Shown: positions 7,377 to 54,719 of the stretch, piece after piece
How positions within the stretch are numbered: the stretch's first letter is position 1
Layout of the letters: every line of letters starts with the position of its first letter
Source of the DNA: Zootoca vivipara
Lineage: Eukaryota
Direction of reading: 5' to 3'
Assembly: GCF_963506605.1 (NCBI RefSeq)
Contig: NC_083289.1
Location: forward strand, 28,024,001 to 28,088,000
Length of the DNA: 64,000 bases
Made by a program: the position numbers and the translations under genes
Notes under the pieces: model-generated
The model's input: only the letters and a program-made list of their open reading frames with translations
The model's database searches: none
Told to the model about the DNA's origin: nothing

Positions 7377-10300
7377 TCACTCCTCCTCCTTCTCAGCAGC
7401 TGCAGGAGGGTTGGGCTTGATCAAGCCATAAGCCACAGCCTGCGCCAGGCACTCCTGGGCCACTTGGGCAATTTGGGGCTTGTCCCTGGCCTTGGCCATA
7501 ACAGACAGGATCTCCATCGTCTCACTCTCCATCAGCTTCTCGGCCACCTCCTTGTCAGCAGCCACCATGTTCCTCACTACCACCACCCCACGGTGCTGGA
7601 GCTCAGTGCCAGGGCTGAGGAGCAGGGCCTGCAGGATCTCCAGCCAGTGAGTTGTCTGGGGAAAGAGGGTGAGAGGTCAGTTAGCAAGCAGGAAGGAAAC
7701 CCTGCCTCCACCAGTTCCTGGAGACCCTCCACAGGCCTGTCATGCCAAGTGGGCAGCTGCTGGGCTCAGCCCACCCTCCAGGCAGTACTCACCACTTGAG
7801 GGATGCGGGAGCAGATCTGGGGCAGCAATGAGGTCAAGACGGCCAGCGTCCCTGAAGCTGCCCGCTGCAGCCTCTCGTCGTCCTCCCCGCTGTACAGGAC
7901 CAGTAGCTTGAGCCGGTCACTGCCCTCCACCAGGAACAGCTCCCCAACCTGCCCGAAAGAGAGGTATGAGTGGAGATAAACCTCCTGAGGCCCCCGCACA
8001 GCCAGGTGGCCCAGTACCCCCACTCACCTCTGGGCTCAGTGCCATGTTGCACATGCACTCAGTGGCTGCCAAGCGGATCATTTCGTGCTCCTCAAACATG
8101 TAGCCCTCGATCATGGGCACGGCCTTCTCCTTCACAATCTTCTGCCTGCAGGAGGAGGAGCCAGCAGGAGAAGATAATGCCCCCTGCCTCCAAGGAACGT
8201 AACCGTCCCAGAGGACATGGCTGGGACCCAGGGAGATGGCCAGCCTGCCTGCCTCCCTGGCCTCCCTCTTCAGCCTTACCGGAGCCGCTCACTGGTCCCC
8301 GCCAGGTTGGTGAGAGCCATCAGCCCCTCGAAATTCTGCAGGGCATTGCGGTTCAAGTGCAGGAGGCCCACCAGGGGCCGGACCACCTCGTAGATCTGCA
8401 GGAGGAGAGAAAAAAGGCTCAGGGCGGTGAGGAGAGGTAAGGGGAACCCGACCCCATCCACTGCCTTGCTGTGATACTGCCCTGACTCCACACTGACCCG
8501 TTCTCCCGGAAAAGCCATCTCAGGGGCGGTGGTGATTGTGATCTTTGCCAGGGCCTGCGCAGCCTTCGTCTGCCCTATTTCAGTGCCTTCCAGGGCCAGA
8601 GGGATGAGTGCCTAGTGGTGGAATAAAATCCATATTCTGCTTGACTGTGAAAAAGCCTTGATGCCCCAGTGCTGCTGCAGGGAAAGCCAAACAGGAGAGG
8701 GTGTATATGCATGTGTGAGGCTCACCTTCCCGCCTCCAGCAGCCACCACAGCCCCTCGGTCCTCAGGGTCTTCCACGACAGCCAGGAACACCCTGTAGCA
8801 CACAATAGCAGGCACTGAATGTGGGACCCAGAACTCTCTCCACACAGACAACACACAGCAACTTGAGATCACAGGAAGGCGTCATCTTGGCTCAACTGAA
8901 TTTTCTGAGCTCCTTGGCTAAGCAGAAACCCACAGGTAAGAAGGCCAGCATGTCTCCTCTGTGTAGCAGGTCTGGAGGACTTGCCTTTGAATAGCAACTT
9001 CAGAGGGGCCAGCAGGGCAGCGAGGAGTGAAAAGGCACCCAGGGCTCAGGGAAAAGGGCAGGCTCAGGCCAGACTCTTCTATTCTACTGCTTCAAGTGGG
9101 ATATTTACAATGCAGTCAAAACCAACAGTTCATTATTGCTAGGTAGGCACTTGGTAAGAGCTGAAACTCACAAGTGTTCTCCTGTAAGTTTGCTAGAGTG
9201 AACTCTCTGAGAGACACTCCCACTGTGCTGTGACAGGGGAAGGGCATAGCTATATATATTCTTTTACCTGTTTGGGCAAATCCTCTTTTTTCATCACTTT
9301 CCATCAAACCAAAAATGCGAAGAATATCTGCTGTGTCTGAGCTCCAATGCTGAGACACCATTTTAAACTAGACTAAAGTATGTCTTTGTAACTGAATTAC
9401 CATTATAAGCCTGCCTGAACAAGGCTGATACTCTTCAACAAATATTCTGAGTGAGCAAATGTTACTTTGACCTTTTACAAGACTTTTTGTGTGATGGTTA
9501 TTTTAAGGGGGAGAAAATGGAGAAAGGCCAGGAGAAATCCAGTCTGCCTTAAAGCACCTTGGATTATTTAAACTAAAAGGTTAAAACTAGCTTATTTAAG
9601 CTTCCCTTTCAAGCTGCAAAGGGATGGCACTCTGCTGAACTCACAAACACGAGCAAGGAAGAATGTCTAATAAATATATCCCCTCCTAGCATATATTCAT
9701 ATCTTTACACTTCTATTTTACTGTTCTCTCAAAGAGCCCACTGGGGATACCCTCTCCTCTCAGGGGTGTATGGTCCAAGGGCAGCTCTTAGAAGCAGAGA
9801 AGTTGCCTTGCAATGTCAACAGTAGGTATGTGACAGGACCAGCTCCCAGCTGCCATGTTTAGCTTCTGCTTGATCAATGATGTTTCGGGCAAGACAACCA
9901 GAGGTATGAAGTCACCTTTCCCCCCCAACCTGGGCACCCCACAGCAGATTCAAATGACAAGAAAGGAGATTCTGACTACACATTACTAAGAGCTTTGGGA
10001 CAGCAGAACGGACTCCCTTAGAAGGTAGCAGATGCTCCCTTATTGGAGGTTTTAAAGCAGGGATTGCATGGCCATCCATCAGGGATTTTTTAACGACGAT
10101 ATCTGCATTGCATGGGGTTGAGCATGATCACCCTGTGGGTCCCTTCCCTTCTATGATTCTATGAAAGCTCTGCAGGGGTCAAGGCCTGTGGCCTGCTGGC
10201 CTCACCTGGAGATCAGCTCCCGGCAGGCAGGGCTCAGGGAGGGGCTTTCAGTCTTCACCATGCAGGTGAGTGCTGACACCACACCGGCGGCCAGCAGCTT

Positions 10301-13300
10301 CCTCACACGTTGGCGCACGAACTCTGGCTTGTCCTGGGCAGGAAGAGATGGAGAGAGAGGATGAGAACAGGCCGTGGGATGCCTCTCCTCCTCCTCCTCT
10401 CGCCCTCCTTGCTCCATCCACCAGCATCTCACACAAGAATTCTGGTCTTTGCATCACAAACTTCTAAAAGCTCCCTACTCCAGCCTCAACTCCCCATTAC
10501 CCGAAAAACCATCCCTGCGGAGGGCAGGGGGGCCAGGCCCAGCCACACACACCCCAGCCTGCTAGAAGGCTTCTATCGGCCCCCTCAGGGCACTCCTCTC
10601 CCCACTCTCACCTTTGGGTGCTTCTCAGGGATGTGTTGCTTGGCGTACTTCGCCAACTCCACCATCTGGGGGTCAGGCTCCTCTTGGTCGTAGCTGCTGG
10701 TGCAATTCACCAGCGTGGAGGCCACTGCGAAGAGAACGCTCCGGTTCTCTGACTGAGGGGAGCAGATCGGTGGCAGGAACAAAGACAAAGAAGGTGGTCA
10801 GTCAGGATCTTCATGATTCTTTGGGACCAGGGACCACCACTTGTGCATTTGTTACCTCAAGACTAGGCTACTACCAGGCAAAGTAAAGTGTGCCCGCCCT
10901 TGAGTACTATTCAGAAGCGTCAGCTGATGCAGAACAAGACAGCCCAGCCATCGAACACCAGAAGCTAATCAGAAGTGATCTCTTAATATCCTTGCACCCC
11001 TGATGAACCGAGTTGGGCAGGTAGGTTGGGCCACACACCTGTCAATCGCCAGATGTAATGGTGATGCTGCACTTTAAAGCCTCAGTTGCCCAGACTTCAA
11101 AGCACAGCATGGCGCTGTGTGAAAGGCTTTTTAGAAGCTGCCCTGCCCTGCTGGGAGGAGCAGTTTTTCCTGAATGGAATCCACTTTCCCGCCAACTTGA
11201 GCAAGGCTAATCAGCTGATGAGAGACTGGGAACAAGCCTTGCCTCAGCAAAGGAGCAACCCCCTTTAAGCTCTCAAGTGTTCCTTTGAAGCCCCCCTTAC
11301 CCCCCCCCCACCTAACATCAGGTGGCCGGGCATGGCTTCCCCAAAATGGTGGACCAAGTTTGGCCCACAGGCCGGAAGTTGCCAACCCCTGCTCCAGAGC
11401 ATGGTCTGGATTTGAAAGCCCTAAAGGGGCCGGGTGGGCCAACTCTACCCCTCTGGGCTGGTCTTCCTGGGGGCAACCAGCATGTCTCTGGGCTGTACAG
11501 AGCCCACTGCGGGGAGATATAATCAAAATGCTTCCGCACAAACAAGATATTTGCATACAGAGAAGAGGCATGTTGTTGCAAGGGTCCTCCAAAACACTCA
11601 TTTACTATGCAGAGAAATCCTTTTCTTCTTGGGTGTTGAAGTGGGGGAATAATTTCATCATGCGAAACTGCAGCTATGGATCTTAAGTGGTACAGCGGAG
11701 ACACTTCACTGAGACTCAGGAAATTTTGCCACAGAACAGCATTTTACATCTTCAAATATATGAAGGGCTATCACATAGAAGACAGAGCAAGGTGGTTTTC
11801 TTCTGCTCCAATGGTAGGAACCCAAACCAATGTATTCAAATGACAACAAAGAAGTTTCCCACTAAACATTAGGAAGAACCTTCTGATGGTAGTTGTTTGA
11901 CAACGGAACAGACTCTCTCAGAAAGTGGTGGGCTCCCCCTTCACTGAAAGTTTTTTAGCAGAGGCTGTATGGTCATCTGTCAGGGATTTTAAACTTTAAT
12001 TCCTGCATTGCAGGGGTTGGACTAGATGACCCTTGGGACCTCTTCCAATTCTACAATTCTAAAAATTACTGCGTACCATATACTACAGCTGGGTTGCTAT
12101 TCCTAAGCAAGGGAAATTCAACATAAACAAGGCAGAGGCAAAAAGAACCTCTGGACATGCCCTCCCACAGATACCCCACCCACCCACTTTGCCCTCCCTC
12201 TTGGAAGAGGACCTCACCCTGGCCAGCCAGAAGAGAGCCTGCAGGGCAGCCTTGTCCTCCAGGAGCTCCTCCTTAACATCCGCATCCAAGGAGAGGAAGG
12301 CCAGTCCCTCAGCTGCCCAGTAGCGGGTGCCGGCATCGATGGCCTCATTGCACAGCCACCTGGAAGCAGGAGAAGGAGAATCAGGATCCCTCCCTAGTGC
12401 CTCTACCAGTTGAGACCCTAGCGGGAAAGGGGCATAGGAAGCCCCACCACCCCATGCTTCAGTGGGGCATGGTCTGTTGCGCAGCCGCCAGAAGGACTCA
12501 TTCTTGTCATCCGTCAGCTCCCACCAGCCCCCAAGATTTTGAGCAGAAGGGGACAGGCAGCCTGACATCCTTCTAAAGGGGAAGGCAGTCATGTGGCACA
12601 GAAGAGGCTAAAGCGCCTGGGACATGGGGGAAGAAAGCAGCGCTCACTCACTTCCGGCACTGCTTGGCCAGCTTCAGGGTAGAGCCTTCCGCAAACTGCT
12701 TCATGCTGAAATCTGTGCCCCCTGCCGAGCCCAATTTGCAGAGGCCCTGGAAAGAGAAACTGTGATGTGCCACAGCCACCACCTGACCCTAGAACTTCCT
12801 TCAATCTGGGAAGATGGAGGAGGAACAGTGTTGGGTCTTGTTGCAGCCAGAAAATGGCTTCCCCCCCCCTCTCCAAGATCTGCTGCCTTTTGCTCACCAC
12901 CAGGGCCCGGATGCGAATGCTGTCGCGCTCACTGTGCTTGTAGATCTCCTTGAGTAGTGTCACCCCATTGGCAGTGATGAAGGTGGCCCGCTTGGCCTTG
13001 TCGGCAGCATGGATCAGGGCCTCCACGGCCACGAGCTGGTCGGCCTCCCGTGATGAGGCGCACAAGGCCAGAATGCTCTCCATGATGCCACTCATCTCCA
13101 GCACCCTGTTCCCAGCCTCAGAGGGGCCTTGCAGGAGACAGGAGGCCGTCTGGATGGCCCGCAATTTCCCAGGGACGCCATGGTCCTGGAACCAGCCCCT
13201 GGGAGGTGAAGGAAAGGCGGCCCGTCAGGAGCAGCCAGGACATTCCAAAGCTGAAACCCCAAGCTCTGCACCAGAAAGAAGGCTGGAGTCTCAAATCCGA

Positions 13301-16300
13301 GATTAACCAACAGCATCTCCTGGCAACAAAAGTCCTCCTCCCACCCCCTATTATGTATTTATTTCATAACATCTATATATCACATGACTGTAGAAAACCT
13401 CAAAGTGGTTTATAAAAAGAATAAGACAGTAAGATTATTGGTACAAACAACACATTCTAAAAATTAAAACCAGCAATAAACTAAAAACACACCAGCCTTT
13501 TAAATATATGGGTAGGCTTGGCTACACAAAAATGTTTTCAGCAGACACCGAAAAGAGTAGAATGAAGGTGCCTGCCTGATATCGCCACACTAGAAGATCC
13601 ATTTCTTATAAATGCAGAACAGGTATTATATGGCACTTGGAACAGTGCCAATTCTGCAGATGGAAGTGGTCGAGTGAGCGTATCTGGGTTAAGGCAATCT
13701 CACAGGTAAATTATTAAGGGCTTTGCATACTAATAGTAACTTTTTGAACCTGTCTCGGTAGCAAATCAGCAACCAGTACAGATTTCTGAGGACGGGTGCT
13801 ATATGCTGACAAGTTTTTGCTCCTTTCAGCAATCAAGCTGCAGCATTCTGTGCTAGCTTCAGCTTCCAGATCAGGTGCAAGGGAAGCCCCATATAGAGTG
13901 CACTGCAGTAATCCAGTCTTGAAGCAACCAGTACCTGAACAACAGTAACTGGGTGTCTCTGGCCAAGCTGATGGGCTGTTGTGACGCTTTCAATGTCTGT
14001 CAGCAACTAAGCGCTGAGCAGCACTCTCCGCCACCTCTGCACTACTTCATTTGCCCCCCCATGCCTTCCCAGCACCCCCTACCAGAAGCAGCAGGGGGTC
14101 AGGCCTACCTGACATAGTCCTCGCACAGCCGGTGAAAATTCTCCCGTTCCCCGTCACACTTCAGGTCCCCGAAGAGCTTGCTGAGGAGGACGGCTGCGCT
14201 CATGTGAGTATTCTCTGTCACCCGCAGGCCCCCAGGACTGTGGCTCACTGTGCCCCCCACCTCCAGGATCTGCTTGAGACCTAGCAAGGACAGACATGCT
14301 CACTGGCGCTGGCGAGGGACCCAGGCCAGGAAGAGGAGGAGCTCAGGAATGGGCTAGACGTACCCTGGTCAATGACCCAGAGGGTCAGGCAATTGTTTGG
14401 GTCCTTCAGCGACTTCCGGGGCACCACACTGATCAGCAGGTTGAGGATGCTGTCCCGGCCATAGGAGGAAATGTTCTCCCGTGTCAGGGCTTCCAGCAGC
14501 TGCTTGAGGAGCAATTTCAGCTCTTTGGATGTATCTACAGGAGCAGAATCAAGTTGAGGAGGTCTGAGCCTCCTCTGCTCCAGGCCAGCATTCGCAGCCC
14601 AGTCCCACCCAAGGCATCAGCACAAAGATGAGCTTGGCACGACACAAAGTGGATGCTGAGCCCAGCAGGGAGGTACCCAAGAGACTCACCCAAGACCACA
14701 GCTTCCTCCTTGCCACGCACGTCCCTCTGCAGCCCCTCCTTGAGGGCATCAAACATAACCTGCAGCAGGTTGTAGGATGCCAGCGAGACTTGCTCGTCCT
14801 CCATCTCTAGGATAGCAAAGAGGCGCTGCGGCCCCAGCTCAGCCAGGATCACTGCAGTCTGAAAGAAGGGCAGCATCCACTGAGACTTGGGGAGGAATCC
14901 AGGCCTGTCTCTCAAGAACCAGTTACCTCCCCAACAATGCTCAGAGCAGAGCTGGATACCTGCCTAGTAGGCAACTCCACAAGTGCAACTGTGGTTTGTC
15001 AGTAGGAACTCTGGGGACCCATAAACTTACCCAAGGAGACAGAGTTCAGGGTTTTTTAAAAAAAATATATTAGAGGAATATCTATGTTATCTTGCAGCAT
15101 GTATTACTTGAGGATTCAACAGTCTTGCTAGCCCCCTGTCCCCTGACTTCCAGTTCAACCCCCTGAAATGCAGGAATCACAGCTAAAGTATCCCTGACAG
15201 GTGGCCATTCAAACTCTGCTTTAAAACCTCCAATGAAGGAGAGTCCACCACCTGGAGGGTGTCCATTCCAAGAGGTTGAACAACACCAGGCTCAGGACAG
15301 AACCCTGCAGTACCCCGCTTGTCACTGGACAAGGAACTGTTGGGGAGCACTCTTAGTGAATCACTGGTGGTTAGCCAGACTCCAGCAAATAGGAAACCAG
15401 AGATTTCCTCTCAACACTGGAGCAGCAGAGAGGGAGGGGTGAATCCATCCCCTTTCCCAGGCTAAAAAATGGGTGAAAACTCAACTCTGTGCCTGCCAGG
15501 TGGATGGGGTTGCAACCTATAAGCAGGTGCAGAGGCAGAGAAAGCCCAAGTGCCTCTGCAACCCCTCCCTGGCTCTGTGCTGGAGGAGGACAGAAGAGAC
15601 CATTTGGTTTGCCTCTGACCTCCTTAGGCATTTCAAAGACGCAGTACAAGGTCAGGGACAAGTTCCAGGCACACACACCCTCAGAGAAGTGGCATGCCCT
15701 TGAAGCAACAGGTTTTGGAGAGAGTTTTATGCATAACCTGTCAGCAAACGGACTGAACCTGTTAACCCCCCCCCCAAAAAAAAAGAGTGAAGAAGCTTTC
15801 ATCTTAAAAAGTGAACATACCCGAGAACGATGCCCACTGCAAAGGCCAGTGAGGGTTCGCACAGCTGCTAGCACCGTGTCCGCCCGACCTGTATCTAGCA
15901 GCTGTAGCAAGAGGCGCACCCCGTCATTCTGGAAAATCTTCTCAGCACCAGGCTCCTCACGAGCCAAAACAATCAAATTCTGAGCTGCCTAGACAGGAGA
16001 AGAGCCAGTTAGCTAGACAATTCACTTTAACCACTCCCCATCAGGCCACACAGCTGATGGAGGGGCACAGCCAGAAGTTAGGGCTATAGAGGTTTGGAGA
16101 TCCTGGCCCATAATTCCATTGTCCTTGCTTCTCTAAGAGCCATGGGGGTGAGGATCTCCTCCTTGGGCAGAGTTCCAGGTGCATTTTATGTTATGAACCA
16201 CCCTGTGATTGTTGGATGAAGGGCGGTATACAAATCCCATGAGACAGAATGAATCACTCTACACTGAGACTGATAGTATTAAAATAAGCACCACCCTAAT

Positions 16301-18085
16301 ATATTCTGGTTTTGTCAGTCACGGAAAAGGAAGTTACGGTACAATGACTCAAAGTCCTCCTTCCTCCCTCAGGTATCCTGATCCAGGCATCAGAATCAAA
16401 AGCCCTCTGGCTTTTGCCTACAGGCAACTTTGGAAATGCAAAACTTGTATTTTGAAATAGAAAACAGAATTGAAGACTGCCTAATTCTACAACTGCATCC
16501 CACATATGTACAGTTGCAGCACCCCCAAAGTTGCTCTTCATCAGGGCACATCACACCTCCCACTTGCTTGCTGGTTAGAGGCGTACCTTTTGTTTCTTGT
16601 CCAGATCTTTTTCTTCAGGGTCGAGCAGCAACTTAAACATCTGCTCCACTTTGGAGTCTGTGCGGGACATGGCTGTCATCTGAGGCAAACAGGCAGTTGG
16701 TGAGAAACCCCACAGTCATACTTCAGAATCCCAGTACACACCTGAAGCCCAGAATCTTTCCTGGGTGGAGAGCTAGGCTGCCCCGCAAGGGAGGCGCCTA
16801 CCCTCACAATGCCCCTACTCCCCCAATGCTTCTCCTACCTTCTCATGCATGCTGCTGCCAAGGTTGCGCAGAGCCTCCTGGAAGGCCTTGTTCTTGGGCT
16901 CCAGGCTCACACACCTCTGCAGGTCCATGAGGGCCTGGTCGAGGCGGCCCAGTTTCTGCAGGGCTTGGCTGCGCCGGAAGAGGCTCTTCACGTCATGCCC
17001 ATCAGCTTCTATGGCTGTGAACAGGCAAGAAAGTATTAAGAGGCAGCAAAGAGGCTTCTGCAGAGAAAGTGACTTTGGAAGGAGAGTAGTCCCCCACCCC
17101 ACCCCTTGCAGCTCACCTTTAGAAGCATCCAGTTCTGCCTGGACATAGTCCTCCTGCAAAAGAAGCAGAATGCCAGAGAGGCATTGGTGAAAGGAGATGT
17201 AACGGGGGGTGGGAAGTGAGGGGAGAAGAGGGGGAACAGCTCCTGCCCCTTCCCAGAAATACTCGAGGAACTCAGGCTGAAAATGACAGCCCTGACTATC
17301 TTTCTGGGGGACACCTGTCGAATCCTAAATTCTCTGGAGGTTACAGGAGAAGGAGGAGGCAAGGGATCAGGCTGGCCTCTCACTATATGACCTCTGTCTT
17401 CCCGGTACTTCATAGCCAGACAGCCATGCCCAAGGGCTCCCCTTGACTGCGCATAAAGACATCTCAGCTTCTAAGGAGCAGTAGGGTGAGAAGAAGCCCA
17501 CCTAAAGGGGCTCAGCATAGTTAGAATGAGAAATGCACAGAACCGTTGACACGGGGGGCACAGGGAAGCTCTGTGACCATTTAGGGGAAAACTGACACAC
17601 ACACAATGTCTGCTACCTTCTGATGTGTGCTACGTTCACTTGAGAGCTTTGAGAACAAAAGACACGTGGGAATAATCACTTAAAATTCCCCCCCAAGAGT
17701 GTCCCCAAGAGTTTCTCCTCCTGCAGAAGTGAGCGGCAGGTAGGCAGGCTGGCAATGCCCCCCCCGGGGGGGGGCCTCCTGTAACTCAGGCAACCTTCCC
17801 GCTTTCCCCCCTTCCCCCCTCACCAGCTTGAGGTGGCAGGCGGCGCGGTTGCGGTGGAGGACAGCGCGGTGCGAGTCGGTCTCCTCGCCATCCCCAGGGC
17901 AGAGGCTGAGGGCCCGGGTGTAGGCGGCCAGCGCCTCCTCATAGCGGCCTGCCTGGAAGAGCTCGTTGCCCTCCCGGCGGAGCTCCGGGACCTGCGGAGA
18001 TAAGAGGGGCGGGGTGGATGAGCGATTCAGTTTGGGGGTCAGCTGGGCTCCCACCGTCCACCCCACTCACCGCCGTCTCCTCCAT
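7377..18085 (-). CDS. UNC45A: Protein unc-45 homolog A, myosin/Hsp90 co-chaperone (TPR, central and UCS domains; 20 exons, ~941 aa)
   Basis: Exons: 18085-18071 (MEETA), 17991-17824, 17153-17117, 17014-16839, 16679-16587, 15988-15821, 14858-14690, 14534-14364, 14280-14109, 13198-12898, 12746-12652, 12359-12218, 10752-10612, 10333-10206, 8792-8726, 8611-8498, 8395-8280, 8145-8028, 7948-7793, 7655-7377 (TGA); 2826 nt. TPR peptides [17 protein letters not shown] and [12 protein letters not shown]; UCS peptides [32 protein letters not shown] and [13 protein letters not shown]. Confidence 0.96.
10020..10163 (+). mobile_element. CR1 3'-end fragment
   Basis: Contains GGAGGTTTTAAAGCAG..GTCCCTTCC..TTCTATGATTCTATGA. 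Confidence 0.6.
11745..12060 (+). mobile_element. Degraded CR1 3' fragment
   Basis: Contains TTCAAATATATGAAGGGCT..CTAAACATTAGGAAGAAC..GGGTTGGACTAGATGACC..CAATTCTACAATTCT. Confidence 0.75.
13350..13935 (-). mobile_element. Degraded L2-clade LINE fragment
   Basis: Minus strand reads ..GACTGGATTACTGCAGTGCACTCTATATGGGGCTTCCC..AAGCTGAAGCTAGCACAGAATGCTGCAGC.., the L2 RT C-terminal DYC..LY.GLP..QNAA pattern. A related 3' end lies at ~47690-47975. Confidence 0.65.
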
Positions 18086-18230
18086 GGCGCGCTCTAGTGA
18101 CGTCACGCGAGCGCGACAGCCGCTCCCCAGCTGACCCACGTGCCACCAGCGCCTTTCTTGGAGCGCCCAGCGGAGAAGAGAGCGGGAGGCCCGCGAGCGG
18201 AGCTGCTCCACCTCCCGCCCCGCCCCGCGT
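18086..18230 (-). promoter_or_regulatory. UNC45A proximal promoter or 5'UTR in a CpG island: CRE palindrome, E-box, GC boxes
   Basis: GTGACGTCAC at 18097-18106, CACGTG at 18137-18142 and tandem CCGCCC at ~18215-18226. Lies within a CpG-rich segment (~17840-18720), immediately 5' of the UNC45A ATG (GCGCCATGG Kozak context). Confidence 0.6.
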
Positions 18231-18232
18231 AC

Positions 18233-19719
18233 CTTCTTGCCGCCTTCATGTTTCTTGCAGGGGCACCTCCCGAGGATTCGTCGGTGGAGGAGGCGGTGGA
18301 AGCTGCGCTGGTGGAGGCGGTAGAAGTGTAGGAAGTCGACCACCATGAGGGCCAGGACGAGGCAGCCGTAGAGCCCCACGCCCAGCAGCGGCCCCAACAG
18401 GCTCCTGTGGAGGGAAAGTGGGCTCAGACGGAAGGGCGGGAGGAAGAGGGGCAGAGGGGAACCCCCCAACGCCCCTCTCGCCGCCCCGTCCGTCCTTCCC
18501 CCCACAAGGGCATCTCACCGGGGCGCGGCTGGCGGAGCAGAAGCCGAGGCATTGCCGCGGAGCCTCTCAAATTCGGGCCGTGGACAGCAGGACTTGAAGC
18601 GGCGAGAGGCGGCAACGGCAGGCAGGCAGCAGTAGACGTGGGTCGGGGGGTCGGTTAGGCGTGGGCAGTAGAAGCCTGCGTGCTGGAGCCCGGCGGGGTC
18701 CAGGTAGCCCTCGCAAAGGTGCACGTTTTGGGTACCAGCTGGAAAGAGGAAGCGATTGGAACAAGCTGGGTGCTCCGTGGGCTGCCCTCCCTGCCTGGGC
18801 TCGCGGGGAGGGGGGAGGATACTGCCGCTCCAGCCCCGCTGAAAGCCCACACAGGAGAACCCCGGGGAGGGGGCAGGCAGGCCCAGGGACTGCAGTTTCA
18901 GCGTCTCTTTGGTCGCATGGCTATAGAGTGGTTGGCAGTCCTGTGGAAGAGGGCTGAACAGCGAGGGAAAGTATCCTAATAAATAAGGCTGCAAAGTCGT
19001 GGCCACTTATGCTATAGGAGAACCACTTCCTGCCCTGAGCCAGATCAGACCTCAAACAACCAGCACCCAGGTTCCGGGGACATTTGTTTCCCATAAAGAG
19101 TAAAGCCAAACCCAGTAAAGACTGAAGGTGACTGGTTCTGTGCTAAGGGATTTGAGGGTACCTAGTTCCGATCAGACAGATCTGCATTGGCAAGGCACAA
19201 AAGTCTGGTGAAGTTGTCCTTGAGTTGGAAGATGCAAGGATCTGGGAAAGGTTTTCCTCATACTGACTGGAAAACTGAGCAGAGCACCTGAAGGCAAACT
19301 GGCCTATGAACACAAGCTTAACTCTCTGTTTCAAACACATTCACACATGCACTCCAATTGTCATGCACACAAACACAGACCCATCATTCCTTGTCAACAT
19401 ACTTGGATCCTGGGTTGATTCCTTCCTCCAGCTGATGGGACATCCCAGAACAAGTGGCACCCTGCAAACAGGGCTTTTACTTAGCTCTAGGATGGCCCTG
19501 GAGCCCCTGAGAGTAAGAGTCTTGCTCGAAGCAGGTCTGCACATGGGCTGAGAAGCCCCTGGGAGGCTATAGAAACTGCAATTTCAAAGTGAGGGTTTGA
19601 CACACAAGTTGGAGCTCCTGGGGGGCTACTGGGCTGGTGGGAAAGGGAGAGAAGGGAGACCAGATGCAGGTACCTGTCCTGAGAAAGGCCAGCAGCAGCA
19701 GGCAGGGCAAGAGCAGCAT
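18233..19719 (-). CDS. SHISAL1/KIAA1644-like module (signal peptide, Shisa Cys-rich domain, TM helix); 3 coding exons in frame with UNC45A
   Basis: Exon A 19719-19674 (MLLLPCLLLLAFLRT, phase 1, GTACCT donor). Exon B 18738-18519 (AGTQNVHLCEGYLDPAGLQHAGFYCPRLTDPPTHVYCC..FKSCCPRPEF..GNAS, phase 1 to 2). Exon C 18404-18233 or 18404-18071 (LLGPLLGVGLYGCLVLALMVVDFLHFY.., phase 2 to 0). Motifs parallel SHISAL1 (CEPY..GFHCPRLSD..LCC..FKYCC..EF and [22 protein letters not shown]). Confidence 0.85.
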
Positions 19720-22700
19720 CTTCCCGGCAGCAGCAGCAGTGTTGAGGGCTGAGGCAGCTCTGACTGTCTCCTCCTAGGGAGGGAAAGCAGAGAAACCACA
19801 CTGAGCTGCCTGGCTCCCGCATCCATTACCGGGTACCATCAAGCACCTCCCTGCGCCATTAGGCCAGGCTGCACTTAACAGCTTGCCTCTGCAGGGACCT
19901 TGCCAAGCTGGGGGCAGGGAAGATCCATTAGGGAAGCGACCTGGCTAATGGGAGGGGCCAGAGTTTGGCCTAGTAGTGGGGGGAAACGATGTGGTCAGGA
20001 GCCTCCCCAGCGGGGTCTTCAGCTCAGGAGAAAGGACCAGGGGGCTTTTTACGCCAAGTCAGGCCTCCACTCAGAATCCAGGAGAGACAGACAAGCGCTT
20101 TATGGGCAGCATCCCATATTGGCGGGGGTGGGGGGCAGGCTTCAACAGAACAAACAGCCAATAATCCAGGAGCACTTCTTTGGGGTATGGGTTTTACTGG
20201 GCTAGATAATATGCATCTACTATAAGAATGTAAGAAGAGCCTACTGGATCTAGCCAGCATCCTGTTTTCATAGTGGCCAACAAGGTGCTGAACCCTAACC
20301 CTGTGGGAAATCCCCAAGCTGTAGGCAACAAAAGTTTGCATTTGGCTTCCTAATAGTGTCACTAGTGTTCTTGGTTGCATTTGTAACACTCAGTGGTTTT
20401 GACATTATCTAGATCTACGCCTTTTGATGAGGGTAACTGATGGGTCTCTAACCCTCAGTGAGTTAGGGACTTCCCCTGCATGCGAAGGCAGACTCCAGCA
20501 GAATGAGTGGACGAGACCAATAGTGGGTCCAACAGTCAAGAGGCGGTTTCTGCACATGCTGTAGAGGGAAGTGGAAGTGGGCAGATGGGACTCGTCAATC
20601 TGGGAAGGTAGCCTATCTAGGAGAAGGAAGACTCCTTGTGGGATACCTTCAGGACAAGAAAAGACTAAGGAGTAAACCCTTTAAAAATCTGAAGTGGGGT
20701 CCCCAAGACGGATGAATGGCACCTCGTACACCTGCTTCTGGAATCACCTGCAGCCAAGCTGATGCCCAATGTATTGTATTGTTTTGCTTTCCTTTGGACC
20801 ACATCAAAGAAGGGTCAGTTTCACCTAGTGGGCTTTGAAGTCCCGTCTCGTCCCCCGTCCTTGAGAGATCTTGAGGTGTCCTGCCCTTTCTAGGAAAGTC
20901 ACAACTGTTACTGAAACGTTCCAAATCTTTTCTGACTTGCAGAATGTTCTGTTGAATTTATGAAGCTGCCATACATTGAGTTCCCTCTAGGGATTCACCT
21001 GGTCCAGTATTGTTTATTTGGACTGGCAGTGGCTCTCTTAAGTTGTTGAGAAAAACCTTTTGGGGGAGATGCCACCAGGGATCGAGCCTGGGACCTTCTG
21101 TGTGCAAAGCCTGATCTCCACCCCCTGAGTGGTGGTCCTCCATTGCCTTCTCAGCTTAATCAGAGCAGGGGAGGTCCCTCTACAACCCACATCTGTAATA
21201 GGCAACAGGTAGATAATTCACACTTAAATGCAGTCATCAGTTTTGCAACTCTCTCTACAACTTTCAAATAACAGAATCAAGAATGAGTCTAAAAGGATTC
21301 TATATCCAGTCACTTCTTCAGTTTGACCCAATGTTTCACCTCCCAAAATTTCACAATATTGGATTATTATTTTTAATGGACACAGTATATGTTTGATTCT
21401 ATGGGGCATCATCCAGCAAAGTAGTTTCATTAGTGTGAGGATCTCTGGTTATATCACAGGGCTCCTTCCTTTCTTCTCCCCATGCACCCCTTAAATCTGT
21501 TCCAGAAGGGGACAACACAGGCAGAGTAAGGAGAAGTTCCACAAACAGAACAATGGAACCAGACATAATCTCTCTTGGTGTCAAAGTCCAGCTTTGGGCT
21601 ATGTTGCCATAACCACTCCATATTTCATTTCCAGGAGTTCTGCTCAGAACCTCATTTTTCATTGTCCCCAGTCAGAATTAGATTGCATTAATCATTCATA
21701 AAGCTAGCACAAGTCCTTTCAGAATTGATTGCAATTAGGGCTTCAGTTTTTCACTTAATTGGCCATACATATTTCTTTTAAGGGTGGGGTCTGTGCACGC
21801 TTGCCTATGTCCTGTCATATTTCCAGCTAATGATTCAAATGACTTTGCAGTTCTACTTTTTCCACTGCCTGCCTTTTTGTTTTCTTCCTTATGCTTGAAC
21901 TGCTCCCAGGGATTGAATCTGGGACCTTTCAATGTGCAAAGGCAGTTGCTTTGCCCACAGGTTCCATTCCTTCCTTCTGGAGATGCATAAAACCCCATGA
22001 GGCACATCCTGAGAACTCCCTTACTACTTTCACTGCCAGTGACCTAACCCCTCTGAGCTCCCAGGATGATTTTTCTATAAGGGTTGCCCCTCCACACTTC
22101 CTGCAGGATTGGCCCTTCACTCAGTGAGCTCCTGCCTTCTGTTTATACTAGGAGTTTAAGGAATAAAGGATGGGATGGGTGCTATTTCTCTCACCTTTTG
22201 AGCACATTTGCAAGGAGAGATGAGTCCTCTTGCCTGTCTACTGACTATGGGGCAGGGGGCAGGCAGGCTTGAGGCCAAGAAGCTGCTAGCTTGCCAGGCA
22301 TTGCTCCTTGCAATGAGAGATTGGCTGCTTGACAGGTGCTCCAGTCAACCTTTGCCCTGCCACCCCTCCTGAATCCCCACTTGAGACCCTGCACCACGGG
22401 TAAGGACAGGGCCTGGGAAACTACACCTGTGACCTCTTGTTCCTTCACCCATCCTCAGAGGGCTGCCACCCACCCCACAATGCCTGAGCTCAGAGGTGCC
22501 ATTCCCCTCTCAAGCATCAAAAAGCAGTCGCAGCACATGGAACCAGCCTACCTATCACTTCAGCCCAAGCCTCTCCGCAGCTGGTGTCCACATCAGTTTG
22601 CTCTCCTCCTGGCCAGGGTCTCTACGAACCCAGGTACAATCAGGTTTGGGCTGCCTTGATGCCTGCCCTATGAGACACGAATCATTTCCCTCACAAAGGG

Positions 22701-23194
22701 AAGCCACCTTTTCTGGTTCCTATCCTGGTGTCAATGCAGCTGTTCTTTCCACTGTCCCGTTGTGCAGCAAGAAGCAACAATCCAGGAGCCACCAGAGACC
22801 ATCCAGCTTGTCCAAAGCATGCCCAGGTGCTGGCTCAGTGCTGCAGATGGAATGTGGCTCTGCAGTAACCAGCATCCCCACTGGCCAGAGAGAGCGGGCG
22901 CTGCCTCTGTCCCTTCCTGGGGAGTTGCCTGAGCTTTGGTGATGTTGGTCCCCATGACAACCAGAGGTGCCCTAGAGGCAGGCGCCGCCAAGAGGGGAGG
23001 GAACTGGTGCCTGAGATGCCTAGCAAGGGCTGCTGTCTTGGCAAGTATCTGAAGAAATGTGCATGCACACGTAAGCTCATACCAATGACCAACTTGGTCT
23101 CTAATGTGCTACTGGAAGGAATTTTTTAATTTTTATTTTGTTTTGACTATGCCAGACCAACACGGCTGCCTACCTGTAACCATAATAATCATAA

Positions 23195-23597
23195 TAATTT
23201 ATTATTTATACCCCGCCTATCTGGCTGGGTTTCCCCAGCCACTCTGGGCAGCTTCCAACAAAATACAGGACCTTCAGGTCCTGTATACCTGAAGGAGGTT
23301 CTCCACCCCCATCGTCCAGCCCGGACACTGAGGTCCAGCTCTGAGGACCTTCTGGCGGTTCGCTCGCTGTGAGGTTACAGGGAACCAGGCAGAGGGCTTC
23401 TCTGTAGTGGCGCCTGCCCTGTGGAACGCCCTCCCAGCAGATGTCAAGGCAACAAGCAACTATTTTACTTTTAAAAGACAACTGAAGGCGGCCCTGTTTA
23501 GGGAAGTTTTAAATGTTTGATGCTGTATTGTTTTTAATATTCAGTTTGAAGCCGCCCAGAGTGGGCGGGGTATAAATTATTTATTATTATTATTACT
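23195..23597. mobile_element. L2-clade LINE 3' fragments
   Basis: Contains CAGAGGGCTTC..GTGGCGCCTGCCCTGTGGAACGCCCTCCC..GAAGCCGCCCAGAGT..(TTA)n. An inverted short end lies at 23195-23255; related pieces occur at ~26170-26390 and ~58640-58760. Confidence 0.65.
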
Positions 23598-24907
23598 AAA
23601 ATACAGTAGTCTGTCAAACATTAAAAGCTTCCTTAAATTGGGGGGGGGGGAAGGAGTGACCAGGGAGAGATCCTTCCCACACCTCTCTCCCCCACCCCAA
23701 GCAAACCTCACCTTTGTGGGAGTAAAATAAAAAAAAATCCTTCAGTAGCACTTTAAAGACCAACTAAGTTTTTATTTTGGTATGAGCTTTCGTGTGCATG
23801 CGCACTTCATCAGATACACTGAACCAGAAGTAGCCAGACCCTTATGTATATTCAGAGGGTGGGGGGGTGGGGTGATGGGAATGGGTGATGGGCTGATAGG
23901 AGTGGTAAATCTGTTGATGACTTTGTGGGAGTAATTAGCCAGTTATTCAAGTGAACATCCCATGCACTGCTTGGAGTTACAGGATCTCATTTGGGATTCC
24001 CTCATATTGAGCCATAATGGCTAGAGGCGGGAAAGGGGTGGCAGTACTGGAACCCACACACTGGACAGAGTGGCTTGGGCAAATCGCAGTGAGTTTTTCC
24101 ACCTGTAAAATGGGAATGCTGGCACCTGTTTGACAAATTGTTAAAAAGCAGCCGAGAGATATTTTAAACCACCTGGCTGTACAGACAGCAGTAGACACAG
24201 TCTGTCTCTGTCTTGCTTATTCTCCCTCCCACCCCCAATCCCTACCCCCACCCAGCCACCATTTTCTTCGGACAGAGAGAAGGGGAGCAAAAAGAAGCAG
24301 ATGGGGGTTCCCCTTCCCCATCCAATTTGAAATGGCTGTTCTGGGCTGTGGTAACACTAGCATTTTGCCCTGAAAAAAGCATCGAGTGTCCAGCATGCCT
24401 TTGCATTCTGAATCCTCCTACTGCAAACTTGAATCAGGAGGTGGGAAGGGAAATTGTCAGCCAAAGTTGCTCTGGATCCATTCACAGCAGGAACATTGAC
24501 ACTCAATGAGAAGGTCTTCCTGATAAGGCAATGGCACTCATACACTTTTCATTTTTGAAATTAAGCAGGGATAGGGGATTGGGCATGGCAAGAATTTTTG
24601 TGGGGGGGGGCAACCTTTTTTTGCTATGTTTTATTGAATTGTATTGATTGGGGGCCGCTGCCCCTCCCTGCTCCCCTTGGCTACACCCATAGAGGGGTGC
24701 AAGTCTCCTCAAGGATTTGAGAGGGGGGTCAAGTGGCTCCCTCTGATCACATGTCCTCCATAACCTTTCGGCTCTGGCTTTGCAGATCTAGAGGATTGTG
24801 CACACCCACACATAACTCCCCCCCCCCACACGTTCCCTTCCTGAGATCTGGACCATGAGAAGCCAGGCCCAAAGCACAACTCGAGAGGCAAACACTTGAA
24901 AAAACAT

Positions 24908-24913
24908 TTTATT
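24908..24913 (-). terminator. Candidate MAN2A2 polyadenylation signal (AATAAA)
   Basis: TTTATT on the + strand about 500 nt downstream of the MAN2A2 stop, followed on the minus strand by U/GU-rich sequence. Confidence 0.45.
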
Positions 24914-25416
24914 TTGTTTCTCTTTCCTAAAAGCTTGTTCTGAACTCCAGGAAGCTCACAAGTTGTAATGTCCTTCCAGTGTTTGCTACATCAAGTCTGC
25001 CTCCCTCTTGAAGGAACTGTGAAACGGAGCCTCCCGGGGTGCAGATGTAGAGATCTCCTGTCCTGAAAGCTGAGAGGGCGGGGCGGAGCAAAGATTTTTG
25101 CTGCTGCACCTGTTGCCACAGCGTCCCATTCTGACAGCACAGCCAGTCACCTCCAGCATCTAGCACCCAACTGCAACGGGTGTTGTCAAGCCTTTGCACA
25201 GGAGGCGTCACCATGCCAGGCCAGCCTGGTCTGGCCGGGCCTTTGGTGCCATACTGTCTTTTAGGAGCAGACAAATAAATAATGAATCTCTGGATCCTAG
25301 CGGCCTCCTGGTGCTGGGCCACACAGTGTCTGGTCTGGACACCAGTGGAGGAAGTGCTAACGTCCAGTCCGATGCTTGACTGGCCAGTGAAATCCAGTCT
25401 GGGCCAGTGAGGCGTC

Positions 25417-28400
25417 TTATCCGAGACGGAGGCGGAAAGTGGCAATCTCCATGGGGTCCAGGTGGACAGAGGTGCTGTTGGGGGAGGTCGTGGCCAGCGG
25501 GTACATAAGCGTCAAGGAGGAGGGCTGCAGGGATGCCAGTTCAAGGCCCTGGAAGAGGCCGCCCAGGGATAGCTGGGGATGACAACAAGAGGTCAAGAGA
25601 GGGGGGTCAGCACAAAAGCGGGCTCCAGTCCATGCATGCCAGAGGGAAGCAGTCTACCATTCCGTCAAGAAAGCAAAGCTCCTAGACACCAAAGCCCAGC
25701 ATCGTCGGCTGCCTCTTGCAGTAGCCCAAGGAACCCATCCTTCTACCCTCCCCACAGCACCAGAGCTCTTGCTCCCTCTCCCATGGGTTGCCCATTCCTG
25801 CCCCTCTCTCCCTCAGAGGCCCCATGGCATCTCCCCACTTACTGTGCCATGGGTGGTGGTGCAGTTGAATCCCAAGTTCCTAGCCTCCAGGCCACAGTCA
25901 AAGCCCTTTCGGTGCAGGATCAGAGCTGTCTCAGTGGAGGGCAGTGAATCGTCCTGGAGAAAAAGGCATGGGTTTTGGTCATAGAAGGGGACGGGGAGAG
26001 AAAGCAGGGCCCAGTGCAGGGGAGAAGCTGGGTCAGGGTGAGCTATGATTCGCACACTGGGCAAATGACCCTTTTTTGTCCCTTCCAATGCTACACTGGC
26101 TCCTGGTACATTTCTGAGCACGATTCAAAGTGTTGGTGCTGACCTTACATGGCCTCAGCCTATTATACCTAGGCCTTTTTCATAGTGGCACCTGCCCTGT
26201 GGAACGCCCGCCCATCAGATGTCAAGAAGATAAAGAACTATACAACTTTGAGAAGACATTGAAATCTTTAAGAAGGCAGCCCTGCATCTGGAGGTTTTTA
26301 ATGTCTGATGTTTTATTATGTTATGGAAGCCTCCCAGAGTGGCTGGGGCAACCCAGCCGGATGGGTGGGGTATAATATTCTTATTATTCTTACACTTCTA
26401 GAAAGCTGTGATTGATCCCCATCAGCGCCCTCCCACCCAGGGGGCAACTCACCTCTCCTTGCAGGGTGCGCAGGTTGAGAAGATGGAAGTCGCAAGGCAG
26501 GGGCCCCGAGAGGGGCAGGAAGGGCCTCAGGGTGGGGGGCGGTGGCTTCTCCTGGGCAACAGGCATGACCAGCACATCAGCATTTAGCTGCATGGAGGTC
26601 AGGTGGCTGAGCAGAGATGGGAAACTCGTTGCCTGGCCAGCCTCCGCCTGAGAAGGAAAGAAAGCCCAGCAATGACAGGCAGATGTGTGTCCCACCCCCA
26701 GGGGCCAAAGGTGCTCTGGGGGCCAGGAGGTCACCCACAGGAAGCCCACCCTCCCGCCTTCTAAGCTATGATGGCCACTGAGCTAGGAACCGGGCTACCA
26801 CACACACACGGGCACAGAGGTGGGCCCAGCAGCTACGTCACCACCAGCTAGCACACCAGACAGGGCCAGGCTTTACCTCTTGGCTGTTGGCCTTGTGGAT
26901 GGGAAAGACCAAGTCTCTAAGCATGGAGGCCAGTTTGGAAAAGAAGCTGGAGCTCTGGGTGGAAATGGGGGCAGGGAGAGGGGCGGTGAGAACAGCCATG
27001 TTACAACACGATCCGAAGGTGCACAGCCCTTGCAGAGCAAGGAGGCCAGGAACAGGCCGCCTCGCCTGGGCTGGAGGGACTCCTGGCATATGCGGGGGGG
27101 GGGAGGTCCCCCCCCAAAAAAAGTCCCTCTCTTTTACATGCTACTCAAGGCAACAGTCTGCTTCTCACTTCCCTTGTTTTGAAGCTGGCCTGCCAGGGGC
27201 TTCCTTCTGCTGACTCCATGGTATCTCTTCCCCTCACTGCTCAGCAACTTTCTCAGGCCGCTCCATTTCACACAGCCCAGGGCTGATCTCTGGAGGCATT
27301 CATGCTTCTCCCCAGGAGAGACTGACCACCCCACTCTCTCCACACTCAGTCTTCTACCTTTTCACCAGCGGCTGACAGGTGGGACCACCTTTACTTCTCT
27401 ACTGCAATTGTTCTGAAGGAGACCCTGCAGTTTGCCCCCTGAGAGCCAAAATCACTATTGCAAACACTGTTGGAATGTTTTGAATATGTATCATTCAGCA
27501 TTATTTTGTGCTTGCATGCACCTGTTTATTCTCGGGAGCCTTTCGGCTGAAACACAACAAAGGAATCCTGTCCCCAGGATGAAGAGACTCACTTCTCCTT
27601 TCTCTTCCCAAACAAAGCAGACAAAGATTGGAAGCATTTTGAGCCTAGCCTTTTTGATCTGTCTAAAGCGTTGCTGGAATGAAGGAATGGGTGCTCTGCA
27701 GTGTGTTGCAGGCAGGAGTTCCAAGGAAGAGCGAGGGAAAGGATAACATGCTGAACATCCTGGCCTGGAGGAATAATTTGTGCAATAGGGCAAATGTGGG
27801 GATTTTGAGCTAGCTCCAGGTTCCATCAGCCTGGGACAGGTGGTAGAACGCAAGACTTTTATCATGCGAATGAACTCCCAGCTATGAGATCATCCGTCTG
27901 GGAACTGCTGTGGCTTCCCAAACACAAAGGAAAATCCTTCCTTAGAGGTACTTGCAAGAGGTGCGGTGAGGGGCTGGTGCCCAGGAGACTGGCAAGCAGA
28001 AGCAACTCAGTGCCGCTCTTGAGCTGTAGCGCTGGCCTGGGCCCCGGGCCCCAAAGGAGCCTCAGATTTCGTGTCCTTCTGAACGTATCAGATAAGCCTG
28101 GATCAAACTCTGCACATGTTTGTTGACACTCTGAAAAACCCAAGCCAATTAGTGAGGGAGACACAGGTGCCTGGGCTGAGTGGCCAGGCGCAAGGGGTGC
28201 TCAGCACCCAGTCCTTGTACCTTGCTTGCTGCGCTGTGTCGCTCCAGGAGGAGGCGGAAGCGGTTGCAGGTCCGCTTGTTGTCCTTCAGGCCTTGTCCGA
28301 GGCCACGGTTGTCATCCTGCATGAGGCGCCGGTCCAGAATCACCTCCAGCTGGCCTGGAAGTTGAACCGGGGGAGGGAGAGGAAGGAAAAGGGGGAAAGT

Positions 28401-31400
28401 AAGAGGAGCTCCAACCTAGACAGGTGGCCTACTTCTGACACACAGGGGGGATCTTGCCAGCACAGAAGCAGCTGCTGAAGCCCCAACAAAGACCCCCTGC
28501 GGCTGACCTCCCATCCCACAAACTGTTCCTCCTCCCCACTCAGGCTTCTGGCTCAGTCCCAGGAGACCCTACTATCCCTAGACGTCATAAGAGTCTGCTG
28601 AATCAGGCCAGCGGCCCATCTAGTCCAGCATGTTGTTCTCACAGTGGCCAGTCAGATGCCTCTGTGGGAAGCCTGCAAGCATGATCCAAGGACAAGGGGA
28701 CTTTCTCCTCTCCTGTAGCCTCCAGCAACTGCGATTCGGAAACATTGCTGCCTCCAATTGGGGAGGCAGAGCACAGCCAACCTGGCTAGTAGCCATCAAT
28801 AGCCCTCTCTTCCATGAATTTCTCCAATCTTCTTTTAAAGCCATCTAGTTTGGTGGCCATCCCTGCCTCCCATGGGATAAAGCTTCACAGTTTGAATCTG
28901 CCTTGCAGGAAGGAGGACTTTCTTTCCTCTGTTCTGAATTGTCCAGCTTCCAGCTTCACGGGATGTCTGCATCCTAGTACCTTGGGAGAAGGAGAAGTCC
29001 CAGGCCTGGTGCTTCCCATCTGCAGCCACCCCAGGAGAGACACCTTTGCCCACTGTCCCAACCCGCTCACCACTGCTGAGGCTGGAGACGCCCAAGGCTT
29101 GGGCCGTGTGCAGCGTCAGGCGGCTCCGCGCATCTTGGATGTAGGCCATGACCGGCATGGGGTAGAAGTTGGCCTGGAGAGGCAGCTTCTTCAGGTACTG
29201 GCGGGGCTGGATCTGCCAGGAGAGGAGAGTGCTGAGAAGCCAAGAGGGCAGGCAGTCCCTCTCCAGCCTCTTCGCAAGGGCGGCAGGGTGTGTGTGTTTT
29301 CAGCCTCCCTCCCTGCCCATTACCTGAAAGCCATTCAGGTCAGTGAAGAAAGTGCCTTTGCTCTCAATATCTGTGCTAAATCGCAGGGCCAGCTCCTTGT
29401 TGATGTGGTCTCGGATGTCCACCAGGCAGGAGATCTCTAGGGACAGGCCGTCGACCCCTGCAGGGAAGAGCTCAAATCAAGCAATGATGGATGGGGAGCA
29501 GGGCTTGCTTGCCTGCCTGCTTATGAGGCAGGCGAAGGCAACCGCCTTGGTGACCAAAGTTCAAGAGGTGGTGGCCCCATGGGATCCTCAGCTGTCCCAC
29601 CACCTCTGTCATTGTTGTTGCTACTTTATGGCTGCCACCCTGGTAAGGGAGGCTTTGGTGGGGGCAGCACAGTGAGATGGGGCGGCACCTTCCCTTTTTG
29701 GCGGCAAAAGAGGATGCATCGCCCCTGAAGGCAGGGATGGGACAAGCTCTCCACTGCTGCTGCTCTCTCCCAGTCCCCAAAGCCCCTACCTGGCACGTTG
29801 TACAGCCGGACCACCTCCTGGATGTGCTGGTAGTAAATGGCCACCTCCGAGAAAAAGGGTCCCTCTGTCACCCGCACCACCGGGGGGTCCTTGGGGACAT
29901 AGGGCTGCAAGGGAGAGGAGTGTCAAGGAACTCTCTGCCAGTAGAGATTCAGCAGACGCCTCCCATGCAAACTGTTTAAACACCTGCTGAAAAGTGTTTT
30001 TTTTATTCTGCCAGGCCTATGCAAGCAATTCAGAGCAATTCCTTCCTCAATGATTACCTGATTGTCTGTTTTTAACTTCTGCTCTGCTTTCACAGTATGG
30101 TATTATGTATTTTTGTTGAAAACCACTTTGATTTTGATTTTTTTAATGAAATAGCGGCATACTAACTAACTAACCAGAACAGGCAGGAGTTCTTACCGGG
30201 GTAGGGTATGGATTTCATTTCCCACCATTTCTAAGCTGCCTTTTCTTGCCTCCCTAAATAACCCAGAAGGGTGTGACTAGTGTGGCTATGAAGGGACCTG
30301 CCCTTCATAGCCTGGACTGCCCGGGGTGAAGGGAGATGGAGCTGCCAAGGTGGGAATTTGCCAGGAAGAGACAAATATGCCCCTTTACCAAACATGGCAC
30401 AGGTTGCCTGGAAGCCCAAGAATGAAGCAGACAGAGAGGAACGTTGGCCCACTTGGGAGATTTTCAGGGGTGGAATTTCTGGCATGGAGGACTCCCCCTG
30501 CCTTAAAGGCAGGACTCCAGCCTGCCCTAATGTGGTCCCCTCCAGATGTTCTGAACTACACCTCTCATTAGCCACAGGGTACCGAATGGAAGTTCTGGCT
30601 GGGGCTGATGGGAACTGTGGTTCAAAATGTGTGGCCTGGCTATTTTGTCTTGAACGGTGTTTATAGTCCAAAAGAGAGGAAGTGGGCTATCTCTTGTGCC
30701 AGCCAGGACGATAATAATGCCAACCACAGAAAGTGAGACACCAACACCTGGTATAAGCTGGGAATAATTTCCCCCCAACTAGCCCACCTACCCAGGAGAT
30801 GTCCTACCAACCCCAGCCCCCACAGGGGCTCGCCCTGCCCAGACCTTGGCCTCTCCGTCAGGCAGGAAGAGGTAGGCACCGCTTTTGTCTTTGGTGCTCC
30901 GGGTCCCATAGATGAGGAACTGGCTGCTCAGCTTCTGCTCCTGGGTGTCGCCCGCCCGGTGCACACTCTGCCAGGGAACAAGTGGAGTCCTGGTGAGCAC
31001 AGGGGCCCACAAGGAGCCCTCCCTGTGGCCGTCAAGCTAAGCCGCACCTCTGTCCACTTGGTGGGCCCGCCCTCACCTTGAGGGACCCGCTGCCCCCAGA
31101 GAAGCAGGCTCGCATGTGCTGGTTCTCCAGGCAGAAGTCCTCCGTGGCCGTGGGGATGACCCGCACCGGGAAGGCCTCGTGCTTGTGCACGGGGAGGTCG
31201 CGCCCATGCAGGAAGAGGCGCGCCGAAGACTTCAGCGTGTTGTGGCTGTCAAAGGACTTACTCAGCTGCAGGATGTTGAGGCCCAGGGCCGGCAGGCGCA
31301 TCATGATGGACACCTGTCAATCGGAGCACAGGCAAGGGCAGCAGCAGTTCCCATTGCTCCTCCCAATCACACACATTTGATGCACTACAAGGGACCCAGC

Positions 31401-43633: not shown

Positions 43634-54719
<11,086 letters not shown>

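Follow-up and report, generated by a model that had tools for sequence, protein, structure and literature searches.

UNC45A, a myosin/Hsp90 co-chaperone, is regarded as a soluble protein of the cytosol that acts as a chaperone on non-muscle myosin II and also as a microtubule-severing factor, and SHISAL1/KIAA1644 combines a six-cysteine Shisa_N domain with a single-pass type-I layout. Read-through chimeras between tandem genes are common; in such conjoined genes, a penultimate-type donor of the upstream unit is joined to exon 2 of the downstream gene, and exon 1 of the latter is skipped. Here, we analyzed 64,000 nucleotides of the genome of the lizard Zootoca vivipara (contig NC_083289.1, positions 28,024,001 to 28,088,000; this whole stretch is the window, and all positions are counted from its first letter), in which three exons encoding a Shisa-like module lie directly upstream of UNC45A on the minus strand and are open in frame with it. 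The predicted splice follows the pattern of conjoined genes, whereas the locus differs from such genes in general in that the junction is in frame and recurs in mammalian orders as well as in the lizard, and in that the upstream unit lacks a terminator of its own. The in-frame link to UNC45A is plausibly a conserved conjoined or alternative-promoter isoform, a reading to which we assign a probability of about 0.58.

An intact shisa-like-1a module

The exons were read off the minus strand, and each was translated and searched as a separate piece. An earlier description of this locus, made from the letters alone (the sequence-only reading), had predicted a membrane-anchored fusion of a hidden Shisa-like module with UNC45A. 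Its three phase-compatible GT-AG exons, 438 nt or 146 codons in total, are present in the sequence (Table 1), and translation and hydropathy likewise recover the signal peptide, six-Cys ectodomain, N-A-S sequon, transmembrane (TM) helix and basic, Cys-containing tail that it had proposed. The hydrophobic segment of exon 1, assigned on the basis of hydropathy, has a Kyte-Doolittle mean of 2.92; the helix in exon 3 comprises 19-23 residues (mean of 2.24 over 19 residues) and is followed by a tail in which 13 of the 28 residues are K, R or H. By hydropathy and the basic tail, the predicted topology is type I, with a signal peptide and one TM helix. The GC content of exon 3 by codon position (0.68/0.37/0.89) is coding-like. 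Within the exon 2 piece, the six cysteines occupy positions 8, 24, 36, 37, 50 and 51, and the sequon takes the place of N-L-S in birds, turtles and mammals. Thus, with open exons, six Cys, sequon, TM helix and canonical splice sites, the module is intact. The 28-residue tail contains no PY-type motif ([PL]PxY), so that the proline-rich cytoplasmic feature of Shisa proteins is not seen there; in the fusion, UNC45A would replace the usual Shisa adaptor tail. Retention of intron 2 leads to an immediate TGA after ...PR. An unnamed 132-aa protein from a Logan contig (3488 bp) resembles the lizard module in its signal peptide, carries an N-A-S sequon and ends with ...PR, as would be the case with intron 2 retained; a partly spliced transcript from a related species is a possible source.

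In a Shisa HMM comparison of the kind that the sequence-only reading had proposed, exon 2 alone reached the cut-off of Pfam PF13908 (Shisa_N) with a borderline score (22.2 bits against a cut-off of 22, E = 1.5 × 10−4). An exhaustive HMMER search recovered 89 homologues of exon 2 (best E = 1 × 10−16, best identity 62%); many of these are precomputed as PF13908, the nearest Atlas clusters are Shisa_N, and the pattern C...C...CC...CC occupies the same, nearly invariant columns across the homologue alignment. The Shisa module is real and clearly above chance. Homologues named 'protein shisa-like-1' or 'shisa-like-1a' come from many birds and turtles and from frogs, a caecilian, newts, sturgeons, rays and the coelacanth; a few mammals (vole, pangolin and whales) also have such proteins.

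In a tree of exon 2 and its homologues (107 rows, 64 columns), the window sequence belongs to a clade (support 100/96) with birds, turtles and mammalian shisa-like-1a, to which frogs are sister, and it is about equally distant from birds and turtles. A branch with 100/100 support separates this clade from KIAA1644. This placement identifies the module as the lizard orthologue of tetrapod shisa-like-1/1a, in the sister clade of SHISAL1/KIAA1644. The SHISAL1/KIAA1644-type label given to it earlier holds, accordingly, for the single-pass Shisa type but not for SHISAL1 proper, which shows ~40-42% identity over the domain and forms a separate clade; the window gene represents a paralogous lineage in the tree. 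Nor is the module hidden, given that it is widely annotated as shisa-like-1/1a in birds, turtles, frogs and some mammals, and that the fusion is already in UniProt and NCBI.

Long UNC45A models and the junction at exon 2

The search for annotated long UNC45A isoforms that carry a Shisa domain, another check proposed earlier, was run with the first 125 residues of a 993-aa fin-whale protein as the query, and candidates of 546-1738 aa were considered. It yielded 14 proteins from mammals, 1013-1319 aa in length and named 'Protein unc-45 homolog A', with a Shisa-like N-terminus (cattle, rat, horse, squirrel, macaque, mandrill, snub-nosed monkey, capuchin, sifaka, muntjac, woodrat, cotton rat, star-nosed mole and desman). 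Examples are A0A8I6AVB1 of rat (1086 aa), A0AAA9T3T4 of cattle (1090 aa), A0A3Q2HES9 of horse (1080 aa) and G7P9H1 of macaque (1084 aa); the rat, cattle and horse forms carry PF11701 (UNC45-central), TPR and ARM. A single 90%-identity cluster contains both a 126-aa whale 'shisa-like-1' and the 993-aa fin-whale protein, which has the UNC-45 central domain.

The junction was examined in seven long models from several mammalian orders. In all seven, a tail ending in ...PLQ passes into ASS.E.LRK.GN.LF, the start of UNC45A exon 2 (with two additional residues, ...PLQVP, in rat), and the N-terminus consists of a signal peptide, the six-Cys domain, a TM helix ending in HFC(R) and a basic tail of 20-32 aa. 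Between mammalian orders, the ectodomain and TM helix are 78-87% identical over 93 residues of equal length and UNC45A is 95-96% identical, whereas the tail is 23-64% identical and variable in length. This pattern indicates constraint on the module and linker-like behaviour of the tail.

The window pieces are colinear with the rat long form, such that exon 2 matches its residues 39-99 (43% identity), the TM helix residues 106-131 (58%) and UNC45A exon 2 residues 165-213 (65%), and the remaining UNC45A segments continue on the minus strand down to 7410. From the TM helix to the donor, the tail is 28 residues long in both lizard and rat. The mammalian long proteins share with the lizard locus the order of parts, a TM helix ending in HF(C/Y)R and the phase-0 junction; the lizard tail differs in lacking their ..ARPLQ end. 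The location of the module directly upstream of UNC45A on the same strand, which is seen in the window, is implied in mammals by the 14 merged models, and in an owl by a RefSeq model that extends from a Shisa exon into exon 3 of UNC45A and on into the following intron, with its end aligned to window positions 17153-17085. In the portions of the literature that could be consulted, including a zebrafish Shisa-family paper, no description linking UNC45A with a Shisa module was found. The fusion is a further member of an arrangement that is already in databases and for which we found no published description.

Two routes from the module into UNC45A had been outlined. In Route 1, the donor at 18233 is joined to the acceptor of UNC45A exon 2 at 17991; in Route 2, exon 3 is not spliced at 18233 but is read on across the 5' region of UNC45A and its ATG as far as the donor at 18071, which adds ~54 residues. 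The Shisa frame has no stop between 18403 and 18071 and is the one in which the UNC45A ATG at 18085 is read, with stops in the other two frames, so the claims that no stop intervenes between the start of exon 3 and the UNC45A start, and that one is reached at 17939-17941 only on retention of UNC45A intron 1, are both correct. If Route 2 gave the main product, this open frame would be expected, and the automated models of fin whale (993 aa) and woodrat (1111 aa) indeed read in frame through the UNC45A start. However, the linker between exon 3 and the ATG (18232-18086) shows no codon periodicity (GC by codon position 0.78/0.63/0.80, vs. 0.79/0.48/0.91 in UNC45A exon 2), and the run-through frame stays open in 37-43% of dinucleotide shuffles (43% for the linker), the match of its frame with the UNC45A ATG being a further 1 in 3 chance. 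The open run-through frame is no more than chance. The linker also contains an E-box (CACGTG, 18142-18137, minus strand) and a palindromic cAMP response element (CRE; TGACGTCA, 18105-18098, minus strand), both less than 60 bp upstream of the UNC45A ATG and inside the segment across which the Shisa frame stays open; these are likely UNC45A core promoter elements. A CpG island (17800-19000; GC 0.60-0.72, observed/expected CpG 0.5-0.9) covers Shisa exons 2-3 and UNC45A exons 1-2. Because of the missing codon periodicity, the CpG island and the E-box and CRE ahead of a GCCATGG start, the linker is taken to be UNC45A promoter and 5' untranslated region (UTR). Shisa exon 1 and the region upstream of it are CpG-poor (observed/expected 0.06-0.28), in contrast to the UNC45A start, so that the two starts differ in promoter type. 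Moreover, Route 2 requires that a good donor at 18233 be bypassed, and all seven junction-checked long models use the tail-to-exon-2 join. Thus, the in-frame path of Route 2 exists, but as a chance-level frame across a likely promoter and 5' UTR it gives that route no support, and Route 2 as the source of the main product appears hardly probable at all. A query made of exon 3 and the run-through tail (154 aa) found no match.

The 18233 donor, by comparison, has the phase 0 that had been claimed for it and is compatible with UNC45A exon 2. Its 9-mer, AAG/GTACGC, recurs once in the window, at 16587, the end of a real UNC45A exon, compared to 0.11 matches expected from shuffles. The identity with a UNC45A donor that had been pointed out earlier is therefore correct, although the exon concerned is the fourth coding exon by our count rather than exon 5. 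Given that the linker reads as UNC45A promoter and 5' UTR, open by chance, and that the donor is identical to one used by UNC45A and preceded by a 28-aa tail as in rat, Route 1 is the favoured path of the predicted fusion. It is, at the level of predicted structure, the counterpart of the mammalian database arrangement, since the seven long models join the tail to UNC45A exon 2.

According to the favoured reading, shisa-like-1a, which lies head-to-tail directly upstream of UNC45A, would form with it a locus built as a conjoined gene. Transcripts would initiate near 19.8 kb, at a non-CpG promoter belonging to the module, and be spliced from exon 1 to exon 2 to exon 3 and then from the phase-0 donor at 18233 to UNC45A exon 2 at 17991, skipping the UNC45A promoter, 5' UTR and first exon of 5 codons. 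They would encode a type-I membrane protein in which a Shisa domain on the lumenal or extracellular side is followed by one TM helix, a basic linker of 28 aa and complete cytosolic UNC45A; this protein would match the mammalian 'Protein unc-45 homolog A' models of ~1080-1090 aa. With neither a stand-alone stop nor a strong poly(A) signal, the fusion would be the only complete open reading frame (ORF) available to such transcripts. That the fusion transcript and protein are made in the lizard, and that the tether has a function, are predictions of this reading.

A broader proposal is that amniotes share a conserved membrane-anchored UNC45A isoform, in which an upstream alternative promoter adds the Shisa ectodomain and TM helix and places full-length UNC45A on the cytosolic face of the endoplasmic reticulum or plasma membrane, thereby exposing it to possible control by a partner in the lumen or outside the cell, and that in the lizard the fusion is the module's only product. 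We put this forward tentatively and consider it rather doubtful in this full form. If true, a tethered type-I UNC45A would provide a direct route to localise myosin folding or cytoskeletal remodelling at the membrane, and would constitute the first function for an uncharacterised Shisa-like lineage. The long models already on record for rat, cattle and horse make a direct test of the case possible.

Stand-alone proteins and competing explanations

Stand-alone shisa-like-1a proteins are usually annotated at 150-230 aa. Those of birds, turtles and amphibians (e.g. zebra finch, 172 aa; Mauremys isoform X1, 229 aa; Ascaphus, 224 aa) are 52-62% identical to lizard exon 2 and share the Cys pattern, sequon position and TM helix, and the juxtamembrane stretch can be aligned between the lizard and the turtle and frog proteins up to HRRILGRC (~18263). 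Unlike the lizard frame, they are annotated with their own stops. The turtle and frog tails are 60-100 aa long and end in a common C-terminal motif, ..C(E/D)....PL(Q/E), compared to 28 aa in the lizard; a fourth Shisa exon or this motif was sought elsewhere in the window, and nothing convincing was found. In the vole and pangolin stand-alone proteins, translation continues beyond the tail junction (V, a GTN codon) and meets a stop within 6-7 codons, as expected of a donor left unspliced; no such stop follows in the lizard. Among the 5.8 billion proteins of the collection searched, no stand-alone homologue of 90-285 aa was closer than 60% identity, and therefore none came from a close relative of the lizard, which suggests that squamate annotations either contain no such gene or include it within a longer protein. 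The turtle isoforms X2 and X3 omit exactly the 28-residue TM segment, whereas in the lizard the TM helix and tail form one exon; these isoforms are predicted to be secreted or soluble shisa-like-1a variants.

Several of these and other observations weigh against a conserved fusion isoform. The tail motif shared by frogs and turtles suggests an ancestral independent protein, and NCBI holds stand-alone models for many birds, turtles and frogs, one vole and one pangolin. Phase compatibility alone is a 1-in-3 event. All the long forms are automated gene models and possibly not independent, as annotation pipelines can merge tandem genes or copy each other. At least one of the six Shisa Cys is lost in two long primate models (Cebus and Propithecus), which suggests decay of the module in some primates and hence that it is dispensable in some lineages. 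Finally, the branch leading to the window exon 2 is long (1.1 substitutions per site vs. a median of 0.027).

One competing explanation is that the three exons belong to an independent small adaptor gene that makes only a stand-alone Shisa-like-1a protein of ~150-250 aa, with an mRNA terminating within or close to the promoter or first intron of UNC45A; the in-frame link would then be coincidental, and any chimera a functionless, low-level read-through product of the kind frequent between tandem genes. Birds, turtles and frogs as a rule have stand-alone models, which are also found in vole and pangolin, the openness of the linker is expected by chance (P = 0.37-0.43, in addition to the 1-in-3 frame match), and the long mammalian models are automated predictions. 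Against this explanation, no stand-alone stop codon for the Shisa frame is found up to 17941-17939, and even that one is met only with UNC45A intron 1 retained. AATAAA and ATTAAA are absent from the minus strand above 13363, and, among 14 poly(A) hexamer variants, only the weak AAGAAA is found between 19481 and 16615, such that a strong poly(A) hexamer is absent for ~3 kb downstream. The recurrence of the tail-to-exon-2 junction in 7 of the 7 long models checked, from several mammalian orders, and the equal length of the tail in lizard and rat also argue against an independent gene. We regard this explanation as unlikely, but as one to be taken seriously. Should the link turn out to be read-through noise, the locus would be a useful warning on merged gene models in public databases.

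The long branch could also indicate that the lizard copy is a decaying relic that is losing function and yields no stable protein. The lack of a stop codon of its own, the absence from the lizard tail of the ..PLQ motif with which the tails of mammals, turtles and frogs end, and the loss of Cys from the module in the two primate models would be compatible with this possibility. However, all three exons are open, the six Cys, the sequon and the TM helix are intact, the splice sites are all canonical, and exon 3 has strong codon periodicity; in addition, squamates generally evolve fast. A relic is thus quite improbable, and the conjoined or alternative-promoter isoform joined by Route 1 remains the preferred reading.

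Features of the locus

UNC45A exon 2 gives TPR_1/TPR_2 matches in Pfam (E = 1 × 10−9) and is 59-65% identical to mammalian UNC45A. The mapping searches for the rest of UNC45A left out window positions 14701-14800, and rat UNC45A residues 379-444 therefore lie outside the mapped segments. The coordinates are collected in Table 1.

Table 1 Positions of the shisa-like-1a exons and of UNC45A in the window.
Feature	Position	Strand	Description
Shisa exon 1	19674..19719	-	ATG and hydrophobic, signal-peptide-like segment; 15 codons + 1 nt; donor CAG/GTACCT
Shisa intron 1	18739..19673	-	935 nt, GT-AG; strong polypyrimidine acceptor
Shisa exon 2	18519..18738	-	Shisa_N Cys-rich ectodomain; phase 1 in, phase 2 out; donor CCG/GTGAGA
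Shisa intron 2	18405..18518	-	114 nt, GT-AG
Shisa exon 3	18233..18404	-	TM helix and 28-aa basic, Cys-containing juxtamembrane tail; phase-0 donor AAG/GTACGC
Linker	18086..18232	-	No stop in the Shisa frame, but not coding-like; probable UNC45A core promoter/5' UTR; intronic in Route 1
UNC45A coding exon 1	18071..18085	-	ATG in GCCATGG context; 5 codons, phase 0; donor GCG/GTGAGT
First stop in Shisa frame	17939..17941	-	Met only on retention of the 79-nt UNC45A intron 1
UNC45A exon 2	17824..17991	-	First TPR; acceptor for Route 1 and Route 2
UNC45A body	7410..17994	-	14 colinear tblastn segments vs. rat long-form residues 157-1082

Upstream of the module, ten ORFs of 122-265 aa (window 22496-35294) matched no Pfam family. 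A run of 143 N, i.e. an assembly gap or masked stretch, occupies window positions 45112-45254.

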